DNA of 48,265 nucleotides. Origin: Paramoeba atlantica. Taxonomy: Eukaryota > Protista > Discosea. A program made the position numbers and the translations under genes. The notes under the pieces were generated by a model. That model did no database searches. It had not been told where the DNA came from and was given only the letters and a program-made list of their open reading frames with translations. Where the stretch lies: positions 1-48,265 of the forward strand of contig CDRNVI010000109.1 in NCBI GenBank assembly GCA_977017575.1, given 5' to 3'. Below, one piece after another: positions 19,231-45,499 of the stretch (the stretch's first letter is position 1; every line of letters begins with the position of its first letter).

Positions 19231-22200
19231 CTCTGTACCTTGTTGTTGTTTTTTCGTTAAACTTTACAAAAACTTTATGGTTGTGCTAACGCGCTCCAAA
19301 CTTGCAATGCAGCACTCGACCAACGAATCCAATATCGACCCACAGAGCGACTGGAACGAAATACACTACCCTACACCAATTCTACCTCAAGTGTCGAAGA
19401 AATGGAAAGGAAAAGTAGGTAGTCTAAAGGGCAAAGGTCTAAACGAGATTATGGACAAAAGCAGCGACATTCACGACAACTCCACAATTTCAGACGAAAT
19501 GAACATCGAACCGCGAGAATGCATCACACGACAAGAATCACGACAAAGCAAACCACGGAAAATCAAAGTTATCATCGGAGACTCACGACCTTCGGATCAA
19601 ACAAGCTCAGATATGCAATCGAAGTCTCCCCAAATAACTGAAAATGCGCCGCAAAATGAAGACGACATGTCAGCGGACACCGATGGCCTAAGTACCTCAT
19701 CTGAAACAATGTCATCCGACGATCTGTGTATGAGTGAGCACACGAAGTTTGAAAGCGACAGACCAAGTTCAAGACATTGTATCAGAATGGGGCCGCGGTA
19801 CTCAATGCGAGATCCTTTGGAACTTCCGCTACGGAGAAGAAATTTTTTATTCTGTCGGCGAAGTAGTGTCCCGCGTCTCAAGGAAAGGTCAGGTTCGTAT
19901 AAAGATTGCGTACTCCCCTGCTGAAGGACAAACCGGACCCCAAGGAAACCTCTTTCTTCCACAGTCTGACAAAGCGCGAGTCTTTCAAATCTGTGCTACG
20001 AAGATAAATCGAATACCAAGCAAAGGAGTAAACACGCTAAATTTTCCGGAGAGCATGTCAGAGACGACGAAGGAATCCGACACGCACAGAGACATGGATC
20101 CACTTCCACCGCTAGCTCAAATAGAACCGTCCTTTGCTGTACATGTGGTTTCAATTTTCAGAGAGACAATTCGCGAATATCCTCATTTACAACTTCTGTC
20201 CGAAAAAGAAACCCTATGGCACAGGTTCCTAAATGCTCCGAGAGATGCTTTGACCACTGTGAGGAAAATGCTAATGCGAACACAAGCCACGACTCACGCG
20301 CCGAAAAGTAAAAGTAAATATGAATACAACGTCGACAAGCTCAGCCAAGAAGAACAAGAAGAGTTAGAAACTGACTGCCGAGCGATCCGCAATGCTTTAC
20401 GAACGGCAAAAGCAGGAAACCTAGGCAAAGCAACGCGTATTCTCGATAACGTCTACAAACAATCACCCCTGACTGTCGAAGAAAAAGTTTCTCTTCTAAA
20501 AAGTCTCCATCCTTCCGGGAAAACGCCTCAAATGCCGATGAGTGTTGACTTTCCGCGCATTGGAATTGTTGAACGAGACGAACTCCTCTTAGCGGCCAGC
20601 AAATTGGCAAAGGGTGCTTCCCCAGGACAGGTTTCAGCGAATCGATGTTGCGACTTCTCCCCGACGATGAAGAATGCAGCATTTGCTTATGCCACATGTT
20701 TCGCGACGTGATCAATGGCGACATTCCAAACTCGGTGCGTGATCGACTCACAAGATGCAGATTAGTAGCTTTGCCCAAACAAATAAATAAACTGCGCCCG
20801 ATCGCTATAGGAGAGACCATCCTTAAAGTGTGTGGCATCATTCTTTTGCAACGACATGAAGACGCGCTTAAAAAGCACTTTCAAACCTTCCAACGAGGCA
20901 TACTACAAAAGAATGCGTGTGAGCAAATTGTGCATGAACTGATAGAAGAATACGAGGCAGACCACAAGATCGTCACAGTCGATTACACTAACGCATTCAA
21001 CACACCAAACAGAATCGCCATTGCAGAAACTCTTCAAAAGCATGATGTTTTCAGACCATTTATGCGCCTCTTTTTCCTAGAGTACTCCGAGCCATCTGAT
21101 CTTCTTTTCTTTGCTGACAACACACTCTATTCAACAATCAAAAGCACACCTGGGGTACGACAAGGTTCAGCCCTCTCATCTCTCTACTTTTGTAGCTTAA
21201 TACATCCCATCCTAGCTGAAGTAGCCGATCTTTTTCCTGAAGTCACGATCCGAGCATATATGGACGACATCACGCTTTCATCTCGAAACACTTTATCCCT
21301 AGAAGCCGCTTTCCTCCATCTTCAAGAACTTTCTAAAGACTTATCACTTGATGTCAACTGCAATAAAACAGAGTGGTTTCAGAAAGGAGCAAAAAACTGT
21401 CCATTGGCATTGCAGAAAGCTGGTCTATCGTCACCGGAGAAATCTGTCAAGATCCTAGGCGCCTACATAGGGGAGAATGAGGACGTTAGTGAAAAGCTCG
21501 TACGACAGTCAGTAAAGCATGTATGTCTTTTTCGACGTTTGCAAATCATGGGCCCAAGCAATCTTTCGTTAGCAATGTTGCAACGATGCACGATTCCACG
21601 ACAGGATTACTTTTTGCGCGTCCACAAACCAGCAGCTACACTGAAAATTGCTGAATGCTTCGATGTTGAAATATCAAGAATTATCTCACACTGGTTTCTC
21701 GCCACAGGTGACTCACTCCGCCTCGCAACTCTACCGCAAAAAATGGGAGGTCTTGGTCTCACTCAGTCCACTTTAAAGCAACGGTACTTTTTTGAAGCAG
21801 CCAGACGATCTATTGATGAGCATAAAATATCCACTAAAGCTCCGGTAGGTCACAAGCTGTTGAGAAAGTTAGTGGCGTTACTTTGAATCCGATGAAAAGA
21901 AAAACTAAGGCCTCTAAAGCAATTCGCGAAGAGCAAACAAAAGTGCTGTCAGAAATCAAAGCAAACAAGCGATTAAGTGAAGTCATTAGCAGAACAAAGG
22001 ACTCGAATTCACACTTGGTCTCCACTAATGATTACATCAATCCCTATCTTTTCCGATATTCCACAATGATGCGATTGGGGATATCACTCCCGAAAGCCAT
22101 TGTCCGGGATGCGGGTCACAGCAAGAAGGAAACGGTCTTCTTCATCATGTTGCGGGCTGCGCACAATGTTCAGGTATGAACACCACGAAGAAACACACAC

Positions 22201-26708: not shown

Positions 26709-27319
26709 GTTAGCTCCCATGGCCTCCAGCCTCCGGAAAATGGTGTCATATTTTTCGAGTTGATGAACTAATTTCGAACTGACGGATTGATTCTCTCCAA
26801 CAAAGGCACCGAGAAATTTGGCGGCTTTAGCTTCTGTTGAAGTGCCTTAACACTCTAGACTACCAGGTATTGCGATGTCATTCTTGCCGGTGAACCAAAC
26901 GCATTTTTGGCATGACAGCTCTATTCTTTTCTCCTGAAGAAGTACCTTAAACCGCTGGAAAGCCGTGCTAATGAGCGCAGGATCTTTAGAAGCAAAATTT
27001 ACGTCATCGATGTATGCGTAGATATATAGTTCGGGAAATTCATGTGCCATCGTTTCCAGCAATGGCTGGAAAAACGTACAGAAGTATAACGTAGATAACG
27101 ATGAACTCTGTCGGACCCCTGCTGTGCTATTAACCATTCCATGGAGGTTGCCACTTGAACCGTAGAATATCAACTCCGAGCTCTCTGAATATTCGGTGTG
27201 AAACAGTCTTTGGAATGGTTTCATCTTGTGGAAGGCAAACATTGCTTTCGCAATGTCGCCGGGTGGGGACGTTAAAGGCATTCTTGACATCCAGAGAAAG
27301 AATTGCATGTCCGTCACAC
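26709..27319 (-). mobile_element. CRE-like RT fragment, continuation of 23500-24731 across the cassette insertion
   Basis: DVKNAFN, GVRQSSSLSTLYFC and AYIDD. Removing 24732-26708 rejoins ATGGGAGCTAAC|ATTTCACTA (MGAN|ISL). Confidence 0.8.
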
Positions 27320-27865
27320 AACTCTCCCTTTCCCCCTCTTTTCTTCTACTGGTGTAGTTCTCTGTGCCGCGCAGGTGTGCCATCCTAAAAAAGTGGTCCG
27401 AAGAACTGCCCGTCACCGCCCTCATAAACCACGGGCATTGCGTGGCATGCATGCTCGACGCCAATTGGAGAACCCTAGAGGTTCCGCTGAGAGGAGAAAC
27501 ACGACCGTGAGCACACTGAACGTGACGACACTAAAGCTTGAGGGGGAAGACGAGTTTTCCCTTCGAAGATGCACTCGTCTTTGAATTCTCTTTCATGATA
27601 GAAAAGGTGGCCTACATTATGTGCTTACAGGAAACTAGGTATAAATTTTCCAAGGATGTTCACGAGGATAGAATTATTTATAGGAAGGTCGAATATTTGG
27701 GGCATAGGTTTCATGTATACCTTCAGTCTGTCACAGGCGCGGATTCATACAACGGCATGGCTATCGTTAGACGAAGGATACTAGGAAATGTGTGGAAGGT
27801 GAGTGGGAATCATCTTGTTTCGACATCTTGGAGTTATAACTATGCTACGTCAAAGATATACGTCA
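27320..27865 (+). pseudogene. 5' fragment of a second RTE-like LINE (APE endonuclease N-terminus)
   Basis: TLNVTTLKLEGEDEFSLRRC and CLQETR are homologous to VRTLKLKGEDEFSLRKC...GLQETR at about 36500-36635. Confidence 0.75.
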
Positions 27866-30134: not shown

Positions 30135-31850
30135 ATGATGCGACACATACTCAGTATGGGAAACCCTTCACGTGTGCTCCCAACTGATACGAATGTTCCT
30201 CTGTTCGAAGTATGTACGTATTTCGCACAGATTCAAGTAACAACGGGTATTATCCCAGCAGATGAATACCATTTGGTATCAAGTGAGCATACACGTTATG
30301 TTCAAACAAAAGTCGACTGGATCGAATTTGCCCTCCCCTGCGAACAGAACAAGTTCAAGTGCACTTTGTGCGCTACCGAACAAATGTTCACGTTTAAGGG
30401 GCTCCAAAAGCATTTTTACCGTCATCCGCGGCATGCTGAATCTTGGGCTTTGGGAATGGATCATTCCCATTGCAAAGAGTGCCCCTTCTTCGAGGAGTTG
30501 CAAGGGAAACCCCCCATAAGACGTATCTCTCGAGTGCGAATCACAAAACCGAGAAGGAGGTGTACGACATGTTGATGGACCTTGAGGTGCAAGGTACCAT
30601 GTCTGCAGGCTTTCAGTGCACGAAATGTGCCACAGCACAGGGCGATCAAAACCCTGAACATCGTACTTTCAAGTATGATGACATGCGCAAACATGTTTTC
30701 GAACATGGGCGCGGAGATCACGACATTTGTGAAGCATGCTCCTTTTTCGAGTATGCATGGACAGCGTCCTATCTTGAAAACTCGAGAGCACATTTCGAAT
30801 ATCAGCCACGAACACGAACAGCAACTGTTCGAACTATGGCACGAGCTTCCCATAGCTCACGCAAGCGCAGGGACAGAATCCGGTTACAAGTGTGTTGCGG
30901 ACGCTTGTTCCGGTGAAGTGATGAGCCTCGGCGCTGCAAGAAAGCACGTCGAAAAAAAGCATATGAAAACAAGTGAACAAAGCTGTGAAGCTTGTTCATT
31001 CTTTGATGCGGGGTGTGTGCCCCACAAGAAGAACAATGCTGCGAAGTTCTCTGAGCACAAGCAATGGTACGCATTTTGGACAGAAAACGTCCTTGAAACG
31101 GAAAGCATATACCAGTGCAAACTGCCTGGGTGTTCTGAAACACCTCTTGAAAAAGAGGCTATAACGAAGCATGTAGCACAACATTGCGAAGGAATGCATT
31201 TATGTATTCCTTGCAATTACTTTGCTATCTTGCAAGATTTCCCGCCAGTCATGGTGAATACTAATCACGCGAATTCTCTGAAACATCGGGAAATGGCGTA
31301 TCTACATCCGAAATGGGAGCTTCACGTAAGTTTATCTAATGGATCGTATGTATGCGCACTGCACGCCATACGCAAACTAAGTGTCAAATCTATGATGCGA
31401 CACATACTCAGTATGGGAAACCCTTCACAGGTGCTCCCAACTGATATGAATGTTCCTCTGTGCGAAGTATGTACGTATTTCGCACAGATTCAAGGAACAA
31501 CGGGTATTATCCCGGAAGATGAATATCATTTGGTATCAAGTGAGCATACACGTTATGTTCAAACAAAAGTCGGCTGGATCGAATTTGCCCTCCCCTGCGA
31601 ACAGAACAAGTTCAAGTGCACTTTGTGCGCTACCGAACAAATGTTCACATTTAAGGGGCTTCAAAAGCATTTTTATCGCCATCCGCGGCATGCTGAAGCT
31701 CGGGCTTTTCGACTTCGGATCACACAAGCTGAGCGCAACAGAGCTCATGCAGTATCGCAGGATGATGAGCTGGAACGTGTGAAGCAATGCTCCACGCTAA
31801 CACTCACATCTTTTCAACTGATTGAGAATATTCTCATCAATTGTTTGTGA
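30135..31850 (+). CDS. Multi-zinc-finger region, probable N-terminus of the Helitron protein
   Basis: Repeated C-x2/4-C...H-x3/4-H motifs (CTLC...HFYRH, CVADAC...HVEKKH, CKLPGC...HVAQH), each followed by C-x2-C-x-F/Y-F. About 300 bp internal duplication (30135-30440 vs 31389-31697). One frameshift links it to ORF 31841. Confidence 0.65.
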
Positions 31851-31932
31851 TGAAACCCTCCAAAGCGATGGAGATAAAAGATGCTCTATTCAGAGACATC
31901 ATGATGGACATAACGTCGTTTACGTTAAAGGC

Positions 31933-32880
31933 AATTTCTTTTTTAGGCTCTTCGTTAAACGCGGTGGTTGCTTTCAACTTAGAAGTCACTCGTGCTGCGC
32001 GCTTCGCGTTGAAAACTACCGCCGCGTTTAACGAAGAGCCTAAAAAAGAAAATTTAGCCGGGAAAACGGAAAGATTATAGCCAAAAATAGCCGAATTTCG
32101 GGTACAAATGGGGTCATTTTCGCATATTTTTGCTCTCAGAGCACTAAATCCGACATTTGCGCGTGGGAAATCACTCGCAGGCATGAATGAAAGCCTACCG
32201 AACGTATTGGGTAGAGAATGCGACTCCAACCATACCATTCTTTCGACACAAAAATGCCCCTTTAGGTCCGAAAAATACTTTTTCACCTTTTTTAGTCAAA
32301 AATGGGTCATTTTGAGGGGCGCACCACAGTTCGAAGAAGTGATACCTTGCGAAAACAACTGCGTAGAAAGCTAGTGTAGGTCCCAAACTATCAAAATACA
32401 ATAGGGGAAACGATTTTGGAAAAATATTTTTTTTGTCATTTTTTTCGCCAAGTTGAAATTTTTTTCAAAAAATTTTTTCCGAAAAATTCCGAACTTGGCG
32501 GACCCGTCCTGCGGATACGCGGGGGGGTCAACCCCGGGTAGGGGGGTGGAAAATGCGCGCCAAGACCCCGGCTACCCTTTCTGCGGTTTTTTTTCGAAAA
32601 CTAATTTTTTCGAAAAAATTTGCTCGACCATGCCCCCCCCCCCCTGGACCCCCCCCCTGGACCCCCCCCCTGGACCCCCCCCATGGACCCCCCCCATGGA
32701 CCCCCCCCATGGACCCCCCATTTTTTTCAAAAAAAATTTTCAGTTTTGGACCACCGGAGCCCCCTTTTATATTTTTTTCTTCTATTATATTACTGTGTTC
32801 CTCTTTATATTTTCACTGTTTTTGTTCACTTTTTTATCAATAATCGAGTGTAGAGCGGTAGTTTTACAACCACCGCAATT
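31933..32880 (-). mobile_element. Complete palindromic cassette inserted antisense into the Helitron ORF at AATT
   Basis: Both termini are present; removing it restores TLKAI|NTINTRRFPVKVC. Confidence 0.88.
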
Positions 32881-33387
32881 AACACCATTAATTAAAGGCA
32901 ATTAACACCATTAACACACGACGATTTCCTGTGAAAGTATGTCCATTCAATGAATGTGACAAGTTCACTTCAAGGAACCGTGTGGGTTAACACATATTTA
33001 CATACTTGGAAACAGATGAATCATCGGGGCCCATATGGGTCCTTGTTTCCTTGAAAAAGAAGGGTGAAAAGAACGTTTATACGTTTATTACAAGTCCCTC
33101 TCTTGAAAATGAAATTGTTTCAATTTTGAATCGAGCAACTGTCACGAATGTGACGAATGCTAGCACTATTGACAGTGCAGCATATGCTATCATACAGATG
33201 TGTGAAAATACCATATTTCACGCAAGCGAAATATGCAAAGAATCTTCAGCCAATGAACTTCGGTACTGGCTTGAACGATGTTGCATCGCGAAATGTATTG
33301 TCAATTTTGACACATACGAAGTCAATGGAGATGGCTCACGTCGAACACGTTTTGACATTGAGCGCAATCCAAAAGACGCACTAAAAT

Positions 33388-36300
33388 CCAATCCATCCAA
33401 TCCAAAAGACCGACATATGTCGGTTAGAATGTTAAATGTTTTCCCCCCGAACTTATACTCCCTCGCCTTCCAGTTCAGAGTTTAGTAGTGCCTACTATTT
33501 TACTTTCACACAATACTTTTCCTTTATCTTCCTGAACTCTTCCTCAGGGTATTCCGAACCTGCTGGTGGAAACACATCTTCCGCCCAACTCTTACTATGA
33601 AGGCGCCCTCTTTCCACCAGTTTTCGCAATCTTCCCGCACAGCGTGACTTTAGCCTCGGCGCCACGCTTGGGTGCTGGATTGGTTTTCGTCTTTCCCTTT
33701 TCCAAGGTTCTATGTTTTATCAGCTTTTCCAAGGATTTGTCGATTTGTGATGCGTTGGAATCATTACTTGTTTTTCTCTTTTTCTGCTCAGGCGGTCGAG
33801 GAACTTTTCGCTCTGCAATCAGTGCTAACCCATCTGCCTCGTCGTTCCATTTATTTCCTGAGTGACCCTTGACTTTGCACATATATATTGAGTACAAATC
33901 ATGTTTTAAGGACCGTAATTTTCCGTCTAACTGGGAGAACAAATCTCCATTTAAAACCCCCTTGTAACCAACGATTCGCCGCCGATATCGAAGATTGTGA
34001 AAGAAGTCCCATAGATAGTAAGAGTCTGTATGAAACAGACAAGCGCATGGTTTTGACGGCAGTTGGAGAAGGGCATGCTGAAAAGCTAAGATCTCTACTC
34101 GCTCAATAGTGTCTGATTCCAATGGTATGGATATCCGTGAGGGTTCGCATCGTGGTTTTAGAACTACGATACCTATGCCACTTCGAATCTCTTTCGTATT
34201 TTTCATCGGCAGAACAGAGCCATCGGTATAGATTTGTATGGCTTTATAGGCTGGAAAAGGCACATTTGATTCTTCAACGAACTGTAATTCTGAAGGACTT
34301 TTTTGTTTTTTAGCTTTGGCAAGAGCAGTTTTCCACTTTGCTGACCCAATTTTTTCGTATTCTATGAGCGGTTCAAGTTCACGTCGCAATTTTTCTGTCA
34401 GACGATACCAGTGTTCACGGTCTGACGCAAATACCAATGCCTCTTCCAGTGTAATGTTAAGATCCTTGAAGCAAGCCTCGCTTGGAGATAAATTGCGTGC
34501 ATTCGAGCGTTGTTTCCACTGTACGAGCTCTTGAAAATCACTGGAGTGCCTCAGCATGTGCCCGACGAGCTTGGCCCTCTGAACCTTGTGTATAGTAGAA
34601 AAGCGCTCAGTTTCAAGATACAGAGAAGCATTCGGGTAGCTCATTCCGTATTCATCTAATCTGTTGCATTGGCAAACTATTCTTCTCATGTTGTTAACTT
34701 CAACGTCAATTCTTCGGAGCATGGATTTTGAAATAGAAAGTGCACCGGTCCCAAAGTTTAGCACCGGATATACTATTGAATCGTAGAGGCGCAGCTTAGT
34801 CTCCGGGCTAAGTGGTGAAGACCAAATACCATTCATTCGAAAGAGAGATCCCCAAGCTAGTTTCAATCGATCTTTAACTGTAGATGTAAAATCATTTTCC
34901 TGCCGATGCCCTAAGTGTTTGTAAGACGTAAGTTTCGGAATCATCCCCGAGAATTTGCTGTTCAGGCTCTCGCTGCTCATTTGAGATTTACCAAAAGTTA
35001 ACCAGGCTGTCTTGTTTGCTCCGACGGCTAGTTTCAGATTAGCTTTGCGTGACTCTTCAGCTACATTGTCTATCATATTTGTCAAACCACTCTTCGTGTC
35101 ACTAAATAACGCTATATCGTCCGCATACTCAATGTCACTCAGGCGCTTTTCATGAAGACCCCGCTTTCTTGTACCCCCAGAGCTGAGAAGAACCCCGTCT
35201 GATTTTCCATCTAGCGCTTTATTGAGAATTCTATCTAACACCATAACGAACAGATAAGGCGCCAATACATCCTTGAAGTATTCCTGTAGTGATAGGGAAA
35301 GGTTTTGTGATTCCAATAGAAGTTCGTACAGTGCCTTTCAGCTCATCGTATATAGACATTATCATCTTAGAAAGACATGGACCTACTCGAAATGCATGCA
35401 AACTAGCTTTAATAGCAGCGAACGATACCGAAGGAAATGCTTTAGCAAAGTCTATAAAAGCTACAGAAAGGCCTTGTCCTCTGAATGCTTTGGTTTTTAT
35501 TTCGTTCATGATAATCTGAGCTCCAGAAGTCGCTCGGTTTGGTCGAAACCCATACTGGTTACCCCGAAGAGACTTTTCAATGTTGGGTCTAATGCGGGAG
35601 AGTATCATATGATTCATGAGCTTAACTACGCTATTTACTACGCATATAGGCCGCCAATTCTCAATGTTAGTGAGGACTCCTTTCTTTGGGATGGGTATTT
35701 GAAGAGTGTTGCGCCAGGCTTCCTCTGTGACCCCCGTTAATTATATTCAGGAGATGCGATCTCAGATCAGGGTGGACCGCTATAGCTTGAAGGGCTTCCA
35801 TTGGTATTCCGTCACTTCCCGGTGTTTTTCCTCTTCTGAAATGTTCTAAAGACGAGAGCTGATTCGTCTTCGTTTTGGGATCACTGACTCGCCATTTAAT
35901 TTGAATTCTGGCTATAACACAACAGTGAGTAGTAGGAATGGGTGCCTTGATCACTTTGTGTCGTTGAACTGCCGATGCAAATCTGCTACAAATAAATATG
36001 TGATCTAACTGCCTTAGAGCTTTGTTTGGTAATTCGCATGTCCATTTCCGACTACTTGGACAAAGACTGTGCGCAGACTTACAGTCTATAGAACAAGAAA
36101 GTCCTTTAAGACGGGCGGCCGCAATGGGATCTAGATCCTTATTTGTTATATGTGTCAAAGGTGCATTAAAGTCGCCCAGTACAATTAATGGGCGACGCGG
36201 GTTGCTTTCCCTTATTCTCAAGCAGCAACGTTCGAGTTCTCCTTAGAACTCCGTAACCTCTACGTCCTTAGAATCGCGTGTAGGAGAATATACGTTAATA

Positions 36301-36629
36301 ACTGTTGCGACTCCTTCCTCCATCTCAAATTCACCCGACATAATCCTTTCACTGATTTTAGATACCTTAGACAAGGGAAAAGTGCTGACGAATCCCATTC
36401 CATTGTATGCATCCTTTGCGCGCGCTGGAATGAGGTTCAAGTGAAACTCTGCGTTCCGATATTGTACTTTGCGGTGAAGGACATCCGACTTTTCAGAAGA
36501 TGGGAATCTGAATCGCGTTTCCTGCAGGCCCAGAATATTTATTCCCTTCAGGCCAATGAAGGCAAGTACTTCGCAAAGGTGTCCGCACTTTCGTAGGCTA
36601 AACTCGTCTTCACCTTTCAGCTTAAGAGT
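33388..36629 (-). mobile_element. RTE-like LINE: APE, RT and RNase H; 5'-truncated
   Basis: 12-bp TSD ACGCACTAAAAT (33376-33387 / 36630-36641). APE: GLQETR, NVYSPT, LGDFNA, LDHIF. RT: QYGFRP, FIDFAKAF, GILQG.VLAPYLF, YADD. RNase H: YTDGS, ERVE, TDSYY, KVKGHSGNKWNDEAD. Confidence 0.9.
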
Positions 36630-36720
36630 ACGCACTAAAATACTTCTATGAGACTTCCTACATTGATCGTCTTCCTGGAAGACGAATCGTCTATACGAAG
36701 TCAATGGAGAACTAGTCAAC

Positions 36721-39700
36721 TATACGAAGTCAATGGAGATGGCTCACGTCGAACACGTTTTGACATTGAGCGCAATCCAAAAGACGCACTAAAATACTTC
36801 TATGAGACTTCCTACATTGATCGTCTTCCTTTGGAAGATTTTTCAGTCAGTACGGAAGCTCAAGAAAAGTGCATGAAAAGGTACAAAAAGAGAATGAACG
36901 ACGACCAACGTATCACAAGTTGTGATTCTTGTAAAGTTATTCTTCTCGAAAGTGACCTTCCGAATCCCGAAGCGCAACTTTGTGCAAGAGATCAAAGAAT
37001 AATGGACAAAAAAGGGAGAATTCCCCGCGGTCCAGTAGAACAACCTTCTACAAATCACCTTCCAGTACCCACGCTGGTAGAAGAGATCCTTCTTCAAAAG
37101 GTGTTTTTACACTGCACAATCATCAGTGTGCATAGGAAAGGTGGCGCATATGCCGCATCCTTGACGCCAGACTCCTCCTCCTGAGGCCAGGAGGAATCAC
37201 CCTCCCTTTCAAGAGGCGGAGGTGGCGGAGTGGCAAGAATTCAAAGTTTGAAGCACATGGTGCTCAGACGGCGAGTTCAAACCCGCTCATCGCAATATTC
37301 CCGGCGGCCTCACTCTAAGAGGCTGGGCTGATAACCGACTAGGCCCAGTACTCGGAGGACCGTCCCGGACCCTCCCCTCAGGGAAACAGCTCCCTTACCC
37401 GGCTTACACCTCTTGGGTAAGCCGTGTTGACGTACAGTTCGTCGACGCAGCGTGTTGGCAACAGCACGTTGGTGCCGCCTTGGACAAGCGGAAACTGGTA
37501 GAGGACGTCGGCCTCGGAACTTCCAAATCTGTCTGTGAAGGGTCTGGCTTGCCAGTGACCATCCGGAGCAATCCGGAATGATTTGGATTTTTTTTTTTTT
37601 TTTTTGAGGCCAGACACGAAGTTCACTGGACACTGGCTACAGCACGCGAAAACCTTGAGCTCTTGCAACTCGAAAGAGTTCCTGATCTCGAGGGCGCGAT
37701 TAAGAACATCCAAATTGTTTGGATAGCCAACGAACGGAGAACGAAACGTAGTCAAAGACTATGTTCTGCACAGCTGAGTGGCATATTCGGCGTGAAATCA
37801 GAGACCCTGAACACCTGGGTAAACTTCCTCTGTGAGCATAACCACGTGTATGCTCAACTGAAAGAGGAAGGAAAGATCAACGTTGTTACCGAGCAACATT
37901 GTAGAGACGTTGTCTCACATCTTTGGGATAGATCTGTTTCCCAGGAGGGTGAAAACGCCATCAACAGTATGGTCACCCAAGCAGTGGCTTCCGATACGTT
38001 ACATCGCGATCCTCGCGGTGAGATCACACGATCTTTTGTAACTGATCACAGCCTTGTAAGCAATGCGCCGTCGGGTGCGCAAATTACGCATGCCGTGGCG
38101 ATGCAACTGAAACAAAAAGAAGGTTTACTCAAGGAGTATACCGACATGGAAAACATCTTGCTCGGAGCATTTCCGACGCTGATGCAAAAGTACCCTTTTA
38201 ATGGTTCAACGTTTGAACTATATGAAATCAAGGAAATTCTAGAGCAATCGGATTCCCGATTTGCAAAGAATGCTGGATTCATATTTTACTGCTACGATGT
38301 GCTTCGGCGCCGTGCAGTCTCATCAGCAGTAGTGCAAAATCTGAAGTATAACAAAGATATGCACAGAAGCCTCATGAATTTTTGCAATGCTGATGCTTTC
38401 TATCACATTGTGCAACAGGCTATAAGGAACCCAAACAGTTCCGAGGCGAAACTTCTGGAAACAAAGTTTCTGTTCCATTTGTGCAAGTATGCGGAAAAAC
38501 GATACCCTTTTCGCCGGCAAAGCGAAAGGCATCACAAGGCCAGATCTACGCCTTATACAGGCGATACGGGCTGCCAAGTTACTGGATCACAGTGAGTCCA
38601 AACATGAACGATAACGTTCTAGCTCTAAGAATCATCACAAATGATGAGAGCGAAAAAATGCAGGAAATGCGGGCCAACCTTCTAAAGCGATCTGAGCTTG
38701 TGCAAGGGAATCCTGTCAGATCCACTAGCATTTTCGAACGGCAAATCCGTACTCTTCTTACCGAATTGTACGGAATGTCGAATGTAGATGAGGTAAAGAA
38801 GGAACGTGACGTTCTTGAAGGCCTCTTTGGTCGCCCTCGAGCATTTTTTGGTGTTGTAGAATGCCAGAAAAGAGGTGCGCTACACTTTCATAGTGTGCTA
38901 TGGCCGAATCTTAGTCCACATTACGTCTCCGAATTAATTCACATTGTGAAGGAGCACGATGGTCTCGCGAAGTCTTTGGGTACGACGATGCGCGCTGATC
39001 TGCCCGAGTGGGCGCAAAGGATCAGTAAGGAGCTTTACGGCCCTGCAACGCTCGACTACTCAAAGATGTATCGCGGAGGTCTGCATATCATTCCTGATGG
39101 AAAGGATGATTATTTCAGGGAACATGTGGCCAAATGTGCTGTTGATGTTCAGCAGCACGTTGGTCACAGACCCATGTGTTTCAAAATGAAAGGAAACATT
39201 AGCAAGAACAAATGCCGATATGGCATTCCATCCGTACTTCATGAAAATGAAACGGAAGTTAGAGAGGTTGAGGTTCAGATGGATGAATCCGGACAACCGG
39301 AATTCCGGCACAAGGCTCCAACACGGCCGATTAAAAATGATACCATTTGGCCAGTACTTGATGAAAGGTCTCTGATTGTGCTTCTGTGCAATAACCAGGA
39401 CCCGACACAACACACTAAATGGGGATCCATCACCGTTCAGTACAATAAAATACTCACTGCTTGCGTAAGATGCAATACATGTGTAGTTTTCATTGGGAGC
39501 GAAGGTCCCGGCATAAAAATTATGCAGTATCACATAAAATATATGAGCAAGGACATTGGTCCACCTGTGTACATTGTACCAGCACTTCGCGCAGCCAATG
39601 ACCACCTTCAAATGGGTCTGAATTCAGAGCACAGAGTGCAAACTGACATTCCGATGGCACGCTTAGTTCTACAGAAATTGTCGAACATGACACATCGAAA

Positions 39701-42333
39701 GATAGAAGTTTCAATCGAAATGGCAACTGCCTTTTGTCTCGGCCAATCCTCCGAGTATATGAGCCATAACTTCACATGGATCAATATGAACCGTGTAATG
39801 AAGTTCCTGGCAAATATCTCAAGTGAGTCAGATCACATAGATCTCGAAATCAGTGACGATGATTCGTCACAAGACTCTGATATGGAGTTCGACGACGGTA
39901 TCTTAGAGGCTCCTCTAATGATCACCGAACATGATTGTGCAGTTCTTGCACCACTCCATGTGCGTTACATGCACAGGGGCGAAGATCTTCAAGACCTTGA
40001 CCTGTATTCCTATGCAAGCATTGTCAGCGTAAAGAAGAAAAGAGCTGAACTAGCTCAAGAAGAGCCCGATCATGATTCAGATTTTGAGTCAGGGACAAAT
40101 CGAAGACGTCGTCGCGGACGTCGTGCTAATGGGGGATACGCCTTTGAGGACATTGAAGGCCTCCCGGAATTTGAGCCTGGAGATATTGTTGAGCAACAGG
40201 TGCGCTCTTTGCACACTGTGCCAGCTATACCAGGTTTTCCCATATTGAGTTCTTCAAAAGAACCTGGGGCACGAGCTCGAAGCCATCTTCGAGTAGCGAA
40301 ACACATGGTGGCATTGTTTTCCCCATGGACGAAAGGCTCACCGAGACATGAAATGACCCTAGAAGGGTTTGAAAAGCTTCTCAATGAAGCGAAAATAAAT
40401 ACGCCTGGAAAGTATGACATAATGTGCAATTTTCTTCGGCTTTTACATGCTTCGAAGAATACAGAGAACGCGGCAGATTTGTATCGACGCAAAGATGCTT
40501 GCACTCTGGGAGAAGCAAGATTAGAACGCAACATTGCGTACGAAAATGAGCTTGAAGTGCGAGAGGTTGAACCTCATCTTCAAGATGCTCTTGAAGCACA
40601 GCAGAACACTGCAGTGGTTAATGAAGAGCGATTGGTTCAGCAGAATGCATACTGCGAACTACAAACACGAGCTTTAACGGCCGCGTTAGGAGGTTCTACT
40701 GATAACTCCTCTGAAGAAAATGTTGATCTTGCATCGACAATGACAAGGACGAGGTCCAATATTTCAGTCATAAATGCGCGAGAGCGCTATGCTGAAATGA
40801 TCCAAAACGAACGATTTGCAACTTCGGCTCAATCTGAGCCAAGTGCACCAGTGGACAGAGCTCATTTTAATGAGGATCGTCCACTGGCTCGCAGTAATCA
40901 ATACGAAGAGATTACGTTCGATCGCAGCTACGTATTGCGCGAAGACAACAGTTCCATTGAACTGAATCAAGCACAGAGACAGTGCGTAAATCAAATTGAA
41001 GATTTACTAAACGGGAAACTAGACCCCGAGCGGAAATGTATGTTTCTGCTCGGTGGCCCCGGAACCGGGAAAAGTCTAGTTTCCCGTTTCATAATGCAAG
41101 AACTGGGAAGCCAATGTATTGCAATGGCGCCCACTGGGATCGCCGCATCAGTACTGCACTGTTGCACAATACACGCTTCCCTCTGCATACCGATAGGGGC
41201 TACTGCAAGAAATTTGAAACATCTTTCAAGCAGTAGCCTTCTACCATACCAACAAAGGTATGAGAAATGTCGATTAATCATAGTCGACGAAGTGTCAATG
41301 ATCAGCAAGTGTTTCCTTGCCTGTATCAACGCTAGGCTGCAGCAAATCAAAGGAAATGAGCAGCTTCCCTATGGAGGCATCAACATGCTCTTTGTTGGAG
41401 ATTTTTATCAGCTGAGACCAGTACAAGGAGCGTCTCTTACCATAGAAGATAGCTCTCCTGGTAATAATCCCATTTTTGAGAATATTTTTCAAGTCTCGTA
41501 TGTGTTTGAACTCAAACAACAAATGAGAGCACGACAAGACTGTATTTTCAGATATCTTGCGTCTTCTTCGAAAAGCTTCCAATGAGGGGTTGAAGAAGTT
41601 CATCCAATTGGTAAAACCTCTTACCTCTGAGGACCAAGAAAAGTTCCGCAATGCAATTGTCATTGTTGGAACAAATATTGAACGGCACAAGGTTATTGTC
41701 GCAATGGCAAGAAATTTTGCCAGACGTCACAATTGCCCATTGTTCGCATGTACGGGCGATAACGTCCAAGGTAAACTCATTGACACACACCCTGAAGCAT
41801 TTTCTGTATTTGTAAAAGGAGCACCCGGTGTAATCACCGAGAATATTGCTCCTTATACAATGCAAATTGCGAATGGGACAGTGATTGAAATGAGAGACCT
41901 TGTGTCAGACGATTTGTCATACGACACTATTGATGGTGTTCGTTATCTAAGAAAAGCCCCTTCTTTTATGCAATGCATTGAGAAGGGGTCAGGTGTAGAA
42001 TTTTACGCCAAAAAGGCGCAGCACCATGATAAGGCTTCCCAAGGAAACTTTCAAGTGGAATTGGGATTTGCCTATACGTATCACAAAGTACAAGGTATCA
42101 CCGTGAAGAACGGTGTTATTCTTGACTTGAATGATAAGGCGTGGTCCAAGAGACCGGAATTCGCCAAGCTCACAGTAGCAATATCCAGGGCACAATGCCT
42201 CGATGATATTCGAGTGCTCCCTGGCATGGGCACAGATCGCCCAGGAACACACCTGACTTCAGGTTACCATAGGCCTAAATTTCCGGCCATGGAAAAAGCA
42301 AATCGGCTTACCGATTTGACTTATCAATTCTAA
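36721..42333 (+). CDS. Helitron Rep/helicase (frameshifted, SINE-interrupted)
   Basis: LPVPTLVEEILL (DUF6570-like by recall); FGVVECQKRGALHFH (HUH); YHIKYMSK (catalytic Tyr motif); LGGPGTGKS, IIVDEVSM, GDFYQL, AYTYHKVQG and VAISR (PIF1). Confidence 0.92.
37191..37604 (+). mobile_element. SINE-A, full length, inserted in the Helitron ORF
   Basis: 9-bp TSD TGAGGCCAG (37182-37190 / 37605-37613); A box TGGCGGAGTGG 37223-37233; B box GAGTTCAAACC 37273-37283; T-rich tail. Confidence 0.9.
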
Positions 42334-42540
42334 GAAATTAGATTGAAACGATATTCTTAGGAAGACCTCTCTAGGGGGGAAGCAAGCTTGATACCGGTCA
42401 CAATCCCGGCGTCTTCAGCTTCGGCAGAAGAAGTGCGAGTGACCCCAACGCCCACGCGCCCTCTACCAAAAAAAATGTCTCCATCATAGCTGCAGAATTA
42501 CGCTCCGTCAAAATTGCTTTCAATTTTTTTTATCGAAATT

Positions 42541-42742
42541 TCAGAAGCTTGTTTGCTTCAAAAGCACCCACCGCGGCAGCGGGCCTGTACCGTCTCGAAG
42601 GGCGCCCCGGGCGGGCCCTTCAAAAAAAGATATCAGAAGCTTGTTTCCTTCAAAATTACATGTCACGAGGTAAAGCACCCACCGCGGCAGCGGGTCTGCA
42701 CCCTCTCGAAGGGCCCTCCGGGCAGGCCCTTCAAAAAGAAGA
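42541..42742 (+). repeat. Tandem duplication of about 90-110 bp, each copy with a GC-rich GAAGGGC...GCCCTTC hairpin
   Basis: AAAGCACCCACCGCGGCAGCGGG occurs twice. Confidence 0.8.
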
Positions 42743-42824
42743 CTTCTACGTTCATGTATTGCTTTTTAAGTTGAATGTTTCTAGACTCAGCTTGATTTTT
42801 TTGAAAACTATCTTTGAATTGACT

Positions 42825-43166
42825 ATGGCCTCGGCGGAGAATCAATCAACCAATGGCAACGACATTTCCGACAAGGAAAGAGATACAAATCGCAAAAGAG
42901 ATGATTACTTAGAATCTCTACACGTTTTGCGCTCTGCGCGCGAAGAGCGTGACGAGCGCTCAATCACAATAGAACACCTTCCCTCCTCTACGGCTAAAGA
43001 AGACCTTACCAAGCATTACGCTTCTTATGGCGAAATCGATTGCATAACAATCGTATCAAAAAAGGGACTGGCGCACGTGTGTTTTAGCACTACGGAAGAA
43101 GAAAAGCGTGCATCGAGCGTTTACTTCAAAGGGAAAAAGAAGAGAAACAGATACTTAAATTTCTGA
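42825..43166 (+). CDS. RRM-domain ORF, copy 2, inside the Helitron
   Basis: Near-identical to 12566-12940; lies between the RepHel stop and the terminal modules. Confidence 0.7.
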   Translation: MASAENQSTNGNDISDKERDTNRKRDDYLESLHVLRSAREERDERSITIEHLPSSTAKEDLTKHYASYGEIDCITIVSKKGLAHVCFSTTEEEKRASSVYFKGKKKRNRYLNF

Positions 43167-44501
43167 ATAAGTGTGTAAGAAGACGTTTGGAAGTGAAAGT
43201 TGGTTTAAAATTTTGAAGTCATGATTCGAAGGTTGGAGAAGGAAAGAAAACACTTTTCTTTCGAGAAATTTTCGGCTTAAATTCGTCCACAGGACCGTTT
43301 TTTTACGATTCATCGCATCAAAGTTTTTCTGTGGTTTTACTTTGTGTCTCGGAAACCCTCTGTAAGTATTTGTCACTTCGCATTTTCTAAACTCAAATAA
43401 ATACAATTGAAACTAAATTTGTTAAAAAAATGTTTACATTTACATAGCAGATCTACATTTGCAGTCATCACTTCTTCTATTTTTAGCCTGATCATTCAAC
43501 AAATATGATTTTGATGACTCAATTAGTGCATACCCAACGTACTGTCAGAAAAGCGTTCCGACATGGCATTAACTTCACCCCTGGCGTAAACCAAATGAAT
43601 CAAAACGAAGAAGTAAACCCACGAGGTAAATCCCCCCCCCCTTCAAAAGCCGGGGTGAATTCAAGTGCCTTTCAAAAAAAGAGGTCTCCACCCTGCTTCG
43701 TTCAAAATCGTGCGAACCGAAGGAAAACAAATGTGAGCGGAAATATGGAAAAACAACCCTATTTTTGCCCAACTATCGGCTCTTTTTGGACCAAATCCAG
43801 AATTATCCCTCTGGTTTCTTTTACTCTCCTGTCAAATTTTTCTTTTCTAAGCTCTTCGTTAAACGCGGTAAAGGAAAAAAATATAAAAGGGGGATCCGGT
43901 GGTCCAAAATTGAAAACAAAAATTGAAAAAAATGGGGGGTCTATGGGGGGGGGCATACCCTACCAGGGGTTGACCCCCCCTCGTATCCGCAAGACGGGTC
44001 CGTCAAGTTCCGATTTTTTCGGAAAAAACAATTTGAAAAAATTTTCAACTTGACGAAAAAATTGGTAAAAAGAATATTTTTCCAAAGTTGTTTCGCCTAT
44101 TGTATTTTTATAGTTCGGGACCTATTCTAGCTTTTTACGTCATTGGTTTTGCGAGGTGTAGCTTCTTGAAGCCGTGGTACGACTCCCAAAATGTCCCATT
44201 TTTGATCAAAAAATGCGAAAAAGTAATTTTTGGACACCAAGAGGTCTTTTTGAATCGTGTGGTTGGAGTCGCATTCTCGACTTTAGTGCTCTATATACAA
44301 AAATCACCCCATTTTTACCAAAAAATCGGCAATTTTTGGCTCAAATCCTTCCGTTTTCTTCCCCGTCCCTGGCCAATTTTCTTTTTTAGGCTCTTCGTCA
44401 AACGCGGAGGGAGTTTTCAACGCGAAGCGCGCAGCATGAGTGACTTCTAGGTTGAAAACAACCACCGCGTTTAACGAAGAGCCTAAAAAAGAAAATTATT
44501 T

Positions 44502-45499
44502 ATTGCGGTGGTTGTATAACTACCGCTCTACCCTCGATTGCGGTGGCTGTAAAACTACCGCTCTACACTCGATTATTGAAAAAAAAGTGAACAAAAACAG
44601 TGAAAATATAAAGGGGAACACAGTAATATAATAGAAGAAAAAAATATAAAAGGGGGCTCCGGTGGAGTAAAACTGAAAAAAAAAATTGAAAAAAATGGTG
44701 GGTCCATGGGGGAGGTCCATGGGGCGGGTCCAGGGTGGGGTCCAGGGGGGGATCCAGGGGGGGGTCCAGGGGGGGTTCCAGGGGGGGGACCAGGGGGTCA
44801 TGGTCGAGCAATTTTTTTCGAAAAAATTAGATTTCGAAAAAATACCGCAGAAAGGGTAGCCGGGGTCTTGGCGCGCATTTTCCACCCCCCTACCCGGGGG
44901 TGACCCCCCCGCGTATCCGCAGGACCGGTCCGCCAATTTCGGATTTTTTCGGAAAAAAAATTTTGAAAAAAATTTCAACATGGCTAAAAAAATGGTAAAA
45001 AACATATTTTTCCAAAATCGTTTCCCCTATTGTATTGTGATAGTTTGGGACCTACACTAGCATTCTCCGAAGTTGTTTTCGCAAGGTATCCCTTCTTCGA
45101 ACTGTGGTGCGCCCCTCAAAATGACCCATTTTTGACTAAAAAAGGTGAAAAAGTATTTTTCGGACCTAAAGGGGGATTTTTGTGTCGAAAGAATGGTGCG
45201 GTTGGAGTCGCATTCTCTACCCAATACGTTAAGTAGGCTTTCATTCATGCCTACGAGTGATTTCCCACGCGTAAATGTCGGATTTAGTGCTCTGAGAGCA
45301 AAAGTACGCGAAAATCACCCCATTTTTACCAAAATTCGGCTATTTTTGGTTATAATCTTTCCGTTTTCCAGGCTAAATTTTCTTTTTTAGGCTCTTCGGT
45401 AAACGCGGCGGTAGCTTTCAACGCGAAGCGCGCAGCATGAGTGACTTCTAAGTTGAAAACAACCACCGCGTTTAACGAAGAGCCTAAAAAAGAAAATAT
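44502..45499 (+). mobile_element. Complete palindromic cassette abutting the Helitron 3' end
   Basis: Two 35-bp 5' units, all internal modules, terminal palindrome. Confidence 0.88.

Follow-up and report, generated by a model that had tools for sequence, protein, structure and literature searches.

A family of RTE-like LINEs in Paramoeba atlantica with a cellular-type RNase H downstream of the reverse transcriptase

The element and its locus

The DNA considered here (the window) is the whole 48,265-nt stretch of contig CDRNVI010000109.1 in the GenBank assembly GCA_977017575.1 of the protist Paramoeba atlantica. On its minus strand lies the body of a long interspersed nuclear element (LINE) that encodes an apurinic-type endonuclease (APE), a reverse transcriptase (RT) of RTE-like appearance and a complete type-1 RNase H. 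Its limits, 33388-36629, are exactly those given in the original prediction, which had been made from the letters of the window, and all of the sequence motifs quoted there are found in the window. Outside of indels the window copy is 99.0% identical to an intact copy of the same family (L019), and Pfam recognizes all three domains in its pieces: RNase_H (PF00075, E 2.7e-15), RVT_1 and Exo_endo_phos. The open reading frame (ORF) listing and Pfam together resolve the copy into four ORF pieces; these and the other features of the insertion are as follows.

33314-33387: target-site duplication (TSD), 74 bp, beside the 3' end of the element
33388-33594, minus strand: 3' untranslated region (UTR), about 207 nt, with a (TTGGA)n-like tail at 33388-33405 and without poly(A)
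33598-33822, minus strand: C-terminal end of the ORF, a basic tail rich in Lys and Arg that lacks a zinc-finger motif
33823-34245, minus strand: type-1 RNase H (PF00075), intact in the window copy, with YTDGS, ERVE, HTDS, GHSGN and NDEAD (the DEDHD residues)
34356-35852, minus strand: RT and thumb (RVT_1)
35853-36635, minus strand: APE region (Exo_endo_phos; tblastn match to L019 residues 160-420), broken by a TAA at 36245-36243
36630-36721, minus strand: patchwork filler, 92 nt, at the 5' junction
36722-36795: TSD, 74 bp, upstream of the element's 5' end
36719-36243, minus strand: ORF piece, N-terminal part of the APE
36221-35667, minus strand: ORF piece, C-terminal part of the APE and linker
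35617-35231, minus strand: ORF piece, N-terminal half of the RT
35316-33595, minus strand: ORF piece of 573 amino acids, C-terminal half of the RT and complete RNase H

Compared with L019, the window copy lacks the initial 483 nt of the ORF as well as the 5' UTR, has acquired the TAA stop in the APE, and has suffered a 546-bp deletion at 35852 that took the N-terminal part of the RT and the APE-RT linker. Two further deletions shift the frame, one of 14 bp near 35738 and one of 2 bp near 35271 that falls within the GILQGD motif. Being 5'-truncated, with a stop codon and three deletions, this copy is dead. The original prediction had assigned APE, RT and RNase H to a single ORF; this is true of the intact copies, but in the window copy only the C-terminal half of the RT shares an ORF with the RNase H. 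The GILQG motif that it cited is present, yet it had been read straight through the 2-bp deletion that lies there.

Intact copies and subfamilies

We searched the 45.7-Mb genome for further members of the family, and all comparisons used natural copies only, without any consensus, repaired frame or joined sequence. At the DNA level there are at least eight copies at 98-99% identity and others at 70-74%. An intact ORF of 1359 amino acids, beginning with MADASG, is found in the loci L019-L024 (at 1048-5124 in L019), and within it Pfam places the APE (Exo_endo_phos) at residues 182-378, RVT_1 at 661-922 and the RNase H at 1144-1285. The complete order of domains is an N-terminal beta-barrel with a basic patch, the APE, the RT with its thumb, the RNase H and a basic C-terminal tail of 74 residues; neither a Cys/His zinc-finger pattern nor an NPGP (2A) motif was seen anywhere in the ORF.

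Full-length members measure from 4.6 to more than 5.3 kb. In their 5' UTR an 18-nt unit (GTAAAGATCAAGTTTTTT) is repeated in tandem up to about 15 nt from the ATG, and no ORF1 was seen upstream of the main ORF, where the array reaches nearly to the start codon. The number of units varies, from 17 to more than 60, even among copies that are 98-99% identical: 17 in L022, 44 in L024, 55 in L019, and at least 57-60 in L020, L021 and L023, in which the array extends to the end of the retrieved sequence. The 3' UTR of the full-length copies is about 210 nt long and terminates in (TTGGA)3-4, poly(A) being absent in all copies. At L019, L022 and L024 the element sits in unrelated targets between TSDs of 8-12 bp, of which the 74 bp of the window copy are an outlier.

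The N-terminal domain, which the window copy has lost, comprises about 110 conserved residues (VVWR..W.G.V...Y..LPFPP) followed by the basic patch, and corresponds to 1048-1497 of L019. It occurs as well in relatives that have no RNase H (P0008, P0330, P0336, P0311 and P0287), in some of them in tandem. Its structural model is a small five-strand beta-barrel, and fold searches gave weak matches to Tudor, Spindlin and CPH-like domains (Foldseek E 0.07-0.2, VIA Z up to 5.2).

Protein searches of the genome add at least five subfamilies, at 78, 67, 61, 50 and 46-47% amino acid identity to the window family. All of these reach through the RNase H and many are stop-free, so that the search for the same fusion in other copies, which had been proposed with the original prediction, found the domain retained in all copies and in at least five subfamilies. 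The element is also present in independent DNA sequencing runs. With its near-identical intact copies, and with filled and empty versions of paralogous sites, the family has been active recently.

An intact and conserved RNase H

In both the window and intact copies the RNase H scores 56-57 bits against PF00075, for which the cut-off is 25.8, and in the intact ORF the match has an E value of 5.7e-15. An alignment of 13 diverged domains of the family shows the catalytic residues D, D, H and D to be invariant and the E nearly so; the invariant His lies in KVKGHSGN. Where dS is unsaturated, the ratio of nonsynonymous to synonymous substitution (dN/dS) is 0.13-0.14 for the RNase H and 0.05 for the RT, and the RNase H is under purifying selection. 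In a structural alignment, the AlphaFold model of the domain (pLDDT 89, pTM 0.86) matches E. coli RNase HI over its entire length of 155 residues (TM score 0.76-0.8, 28-30% identity). A match of this extent implies that the basic-protrusion region has been kept. That the element encodes a complete RNase HI, as first proposed from its motifs, is thus borne out by the Pfam match, the DEDHD residues and the fold.

RNase H-bearing mobile elements are very abundant in the P. atlantica genome generally. There are at least 150 matches to PF00075, almost all of them within ORFs whose lengths range from several hundred to over 2,600 amino acids, and one contig (C147) carries a tandem array of over 20 units.

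Placement of the reverse transcriptase

A profile of the RT plus thumb (500 positions) was searched exhaustively with HMMER against 1.84 billion representative proteins. The top matches were the family itself, including the full-length environmental proteins P0214-P0217, which have 1377-1515 residues and all carry the RNase H. The next best, at 230-343 bits, were compact APE-RT proteins, hundreds in number, many of which align over nearly all 500 positions and end within a few residues thereafter. RNase H-bearing LINEs of insects, sea spiders and fungi, along with L1-like proteins, reached only 60-96 bits, and this over the palm and fingers alone; among solved structures, R2 scored 104 bits and the L1 ORF2p 85 bits. 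The names and cluster records of the matching proteins contain no clade labels, and a search of paper texts for the motif strings of the family gave no match.

Three trees were made from these sequences: FastTree on 215 rows, a quick IQ-TREE run under C20 on 81 rows, and a careful LG+G4 run with bootstraps. All three agree. The family is monophyletic (100/99), and its sister group consists of proteins without RNase H (P0008, P0009, P0010, P0034 and P0039; 98/88), of which P0008 and P0009 are complete ORFs whose stop codons lie inside their contigs. Family and sister group are nested together in a large radiation, with representatives as far afield as sea urchin and amphioxus, that shares the box GxLQGDxLAPxLF and is separated from the outgroup with a support of 100/99. 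Forcing the family to group with the sampled RNase H-bearing LINEs, which are insect, sea-spider and fungal sequences labelled by architecture and organism only, costs 154 log-likelihood units and is rejected by the approximately unbiased (AU) test (p = 1.9e-11). The RT phylogeny that had been suggested as a check therefore puts the family with elements that lack RNase H and away from the sampled ones that have it.

Some of the proteins in these trees probably come from very close at hand. P0001, P0004 and P0092 hardly differ from subfamilies E1, E2 and D1 of the P. atlantica genome, and P0002 and P0003 derive from the public ENA assembly ERZ24900291. An assembly with proteins so close is probably from the same or a very close organism and does not count as independent support.

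With respect to the name that should be given to this branch, two RT boxes are informative. In the supplementary data of Martelossi et al. 2023 (PMC10294476), the mollusc rows labelled RTE and RTE-BovB carry PKKGDL..NWRGI and LEDLDFADDI.LLS, and the same two boxes are present in the family (PKKGDLTNIENWRPI and SDIEYADDIALFS) and in its neighbours (TDLDFADDIALLS). Mean lengths in the same study are 4.9 kb (RTE-X), 5.7 kb (Proto2) and 3.6 kb (RTE-BovB), and the element, at 4.6-5.3 kb, is comparable in size to the longer clades of the superfamily. The safest label is RTE-superfamily-like, without assignment to a clade.

Origin of the RNase H

The RNase H gives a different picture from that of the sampled RNase H-bearing LINEs. 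A profile of the family's domain gives bacterial RNase HI about 70 bits, the E. coli enzyme 55-58 and human RNase H1 49, as compared with 25-36 for retroviral domains and a mere 9-26 for those of the sampled I-group-like LINEs. In the reverse direction, a bacterial RNase HI profile gives the family 35-71 bits and the sampled LINE domains 13-31 bits or no match. In the RNase H tree the family forms one clade (96), and the I-group-like domains are on a long separate branch. These comparisons are consistent with a gain of RNase H that was independent of the I group. Taking them together with the RT trees and the AU test, which likewise favour the independent capture that was originally proposed, we consider it likely that a cellular or bacterial-type RNase HI was added after the thumb of an RTE-like LINE, independently of the I group.

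Several points weigh against this reading. Our sample contains no true references for Ingi, Tad1, Nimb or Proto1. The RTE-group label would rest on neighbours, architecture and short motifs rather than on a Repbase-referenced tree, and the RTE sequences that Tay et al. 2010 (PMC2887409) aligned and labelled contain none of the strings LQGD, LAPYLF and DFADD; therefore the family is not RTE sensu stricto. Four other proteins among the top 150 RT matches (P0235, P0241, P0281 and P0327) also carry an RNase H, and they belong to a neighbouring RT clade in which they are scattered among long-tailed members without it. While the RNase H tree, which had been proposed at the outset as a separate check, does keep the family apart from the I-group-like domains, it leaves the family, the neighbour-clade domains and the stand-alone enzymes in a polytomy. 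The RNase H may go back to one older gain followed by several losses, or it may have been gained at least twice. Moreover, the sole RNA-labelled run of the species does not contain the element, which is no proof of silence, and it is we who infer the activity of the RNase H and its role in transposition.

Much of this bears on what is perhaps the most serious competitor to a separate addition, namely that the RNase H was ancestral to a wider protist RTE-like branch, comprising the family and the neighbouring clade, and has been repeatedly lost, for example in the sister group of P0008 and P0009. The domain sits at the same site, after the thumb, in the bearers of both clades, and in the RNase H tree the domains of the two fall together outside the stand-alone clade, albeit in a polytomous branching. 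However, an exclusive clade of the family and its neighbours is rejected (AU p = 6.5e-6, for a grouping that was picked after the tree had been seen), so that the domain would have had to be lost at least three to four times; the scatter of bearers among non-bearers within the neighbouring clade tells in the same direction. The family profile, furthermore, gives the neighbours' RNase H 25-49 bits versus about 70 for bacterial RNase HI. On balance, we think an ancestral RNase H rather unlikely. An exact-word search for the RNase H region in long proteins returned no match, but exact-word seeding is limited and this is not proof of absence.

It is more improbable still that the element comes from a clade already known for its RNase H (Ingi, Tad1, I, Nimb, Proto1 or similar) and that its RTE look is an artefact of the references. 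A single ORF with APE, RT and RNase H is the architecture of Ingi and of other I-group elements, and our comparison set has no labelled Ingi or Proto1 sequences. Nevertheless, the best matches outside the family are without exception APE-RT proteins that end after the RT, grouping with the sampled RNase H-bearing LINEs is rejected as above, and the RNase H of the sampled I group is far more diverged from cellular RNase HI. The weak match to L1 ORF2p, and a catalytic His where the archaeal-like domain of plant and oomycete L1 has Arg (PMC4640811), argue similarly against an L1 affinity. The poly(A) tail, the C-terminal zinc finger and the 2A motif are all absent too. Finally, there is practically no chance that the fusion arose as an artefact of assembly or read-through, with a LINE landed beside a host or bacterial RNase H gene: the window contains bacterial-like DNA at 9.7-12.6 kb, and it is to the bacterial enzyme that the RNase H comes closest, but the same junction recurs in at least eight near-identical copies on different contigs, in the subfamilies down to 46% identity, in P0214-P0217 and in independent DNA runs, and the domain is under purifying selection. 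An assembly artefact was rejected on the evidence of the copies and subfamilies.

Returning to the independent addition of a cellular-type RNase HI, a more far-reaching version of it is possible, if tentative: the family could, with its sisters that lack RNase H and with the long-tailed clade next to them, be an undescribed, mainly protist branch of the RTE superfamily, marked by an N-terminal Tudor/SH3-like barrel and by repeated gains of cellular-type RNase H. If this were true, the gain of RNase H in LINEs would be a recurrent, host-dependent adaptation rather than a property confined to a few old clades.

Insertion and a proposed mechanism

The window copy is inserted in a large Helitron-like repeat (30135-45499) and is flanked by a perfect 74-bp direct repeat (33314-33387 is identical to 36722-36795). 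Because LINE-free paralogs of this Helitron, such as the empty sites L014 and L015 among many others, carry the same 74-mer only once, the repeat is a true TSD. The 92-nt filler at the 5' junction is found neither in the empty sites nor in other LINE copies, and 47 nt of it (36630-36676) duplicate the upstream target at 36784-36830. This patchwork and the 74-bp duplication suggest a widely staggered second nick and template switching at the 5' joining.

We suppose that the family inserts by target-primed reverse transcription, in which the APE would nick the target and the RT would prime on this nick from the (TTGGA)n end of the RNA, perhaps with the help of microhomology. Microhomology with the (TTGGA)n tail is seen at several junctions, and at three full-length copies the tail and target overlap by 1-3 nt. 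The element's own RNase H would then clear the template RNA from the RNA:DNA hybrid before second-strand synthesis, making this step independent of the host RNase H, and a staggered cleavage of the second strand would yield the duplications of 8-12 bp or, exceptionally, the 74 bp of the window copy.

Many Helitron paralogs elsewhere (for example on contigs C52, C43, C41 and C38) have no LINE insertion, and contig C47 has a tandem array of about 512 bp that includes part of the same Helitron segment. Beside the insertion, at 32620-32730, there are at least six copies of a 13-nt tandem repeat (CCCCCCCCCTGGA-like) that yields proline-rich pseudo-ORFs.

Other retroelement traces in the window

One further fragment in the window is related to the family:

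27315-27861, plus strand: separate fragment of a diverged E-like subfamily, 50-66% amino acid identity to residues 116-298 of subfamily E

This fragment runs from the end of the N-terminal domain into the APE, of which it covers the first half, and has a frameshift near 27581/27586. The related APE fragment that had been noticed at 27320-27865 is thus real and stems from a diverged subfamily; it is a separate, older lineage of the same superfamily, in line with the original prediction of more than one lineage. It is adjoined by a minus-strand ORF (26847-27464) in which there is an RT motif of the YIDD type; this is probably a different retroelement by which the fragment was interrupted or truncated. 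A weak RT match to subfamily D3 (23% identity) at 20591-21400 indicates a further, unrelated retroelement RT.

Novelty and significance

RNase H has so far been taken as a clade-level character of LINEs, present in the I group, plant L1, Proto1 and Dualen, and its presence has been used in arguing when retroelements depend on the RNase H of their host. The RTE group does not figure among the RNase H-bearing LINEs listed by Kojima and Jurka 2015 (PMC4640811), and Tay et al. 2010 (PMC2887409) report none in RTE, in keeping with the initial claim that the domain is foreign to the canonical RTE architecture. Full-text literature searches, whose coverage does not extend to Repbase Reports and subscription journals, found no description of an RTE element with RNase H. 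A well-supported RTE-like lineage with an intact, selected RNase H of cellular type, flanked by sisters without the domain and by neighbouring bearers, changes this picture and adds a clean case of modular domain gain, and this in the most compact of the LINE superfamilies. The young intact copies in the genome offer a test bed for the need of an element-encoded RNase H.

Comparison with known systems

The family's RNase H resembles E. coli RNase HI and human RNase H1 in its fold and in its DEDHD active site; unlike these enzymes, it is part of a 1359-residue polyprotein and has no hybrid-binding domain.

As a whole, the element is most like the members of the RTE superfamily (RTE-1, Bov-B, Rex3, RTE-X and Proto2). 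It shares with them a single long ORF with an N-terminal APE followed by the RT, an RT-plus-thumb region that aligns end to end with compact APE-RT proteins, and boxes in common with labelled RTE rows. According to Tay et al. 2010 (PMC2887409), RTE elements have one APE-RT ORF of about 990 amino acids, without RNase H, a very short 3' UTR bearing simple sequence repeats, and TSDs of 6-12 bp. RTE-like features of the family are also a short tandem repeat without poly(A) at its 3' end and non-specific insertion with TSDs of about 8-12 bp, the latter as described in PMC2887409. It departs from RTE in that the ORF does not end shortly after the RT, which is followed instead by the 160-residue RNase H and the basic tail, and in its conserved N-terminal beta-barrel, its 5' UTR made of an 18-nt array, and a 3' UTR that is much longer than the few bases typical of RTE. 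It is also larger than RTE and Bov-B, which are about 3.2-3.6 kb, and neither its box 4 nor its box 5 is spelled as in the classic RTE alignment; box 4 reads GILQGDVLAPYLF, where classic RTE has GVRQGC.LSP.LF.

With the I group (I, Ingi/L1Tc, Tad1, LOA, R1 and Nimb) the family has in common the order APE-RT-RNase H, with the RNase H downstream of the RT, and presumably the role of this domain in removing the RNA template during target-primed reverse transcription. It differs from that group in its RT, which is distant by score and by the AU rejection against the sampled set, in an RNase H that is nearer to cellular RNase HI, and in having no ORF1, no C-terminal zinc finger and neither a poly(A) nor a (TAA)n tail. 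The Ingi clade (ingi and L1Tc) is characterized by a C-terminal zinc finger, a poly(A) tail and, in L1Tc, an N-terminal 2A peptide; the family has none of these.

The family varies a theme that is already known and does not amount to a new kind of element. An archaeal-like RNase H, in which Arg replaces the catalytic His, is carried by plant and oomycete L1 and by the oomycete Utopia elements; in Utopia the domain lies upstream of the RT (PMC4640811). The family is unlike them in that its RNase H is of the HI/H1 type, retains the His and lies downstream of an RT that is not L1-like. These elements nonetheless provide a precedent for what we propose here, a late and independent gain of RNase H within a LINE lineage that is otherwise without it.

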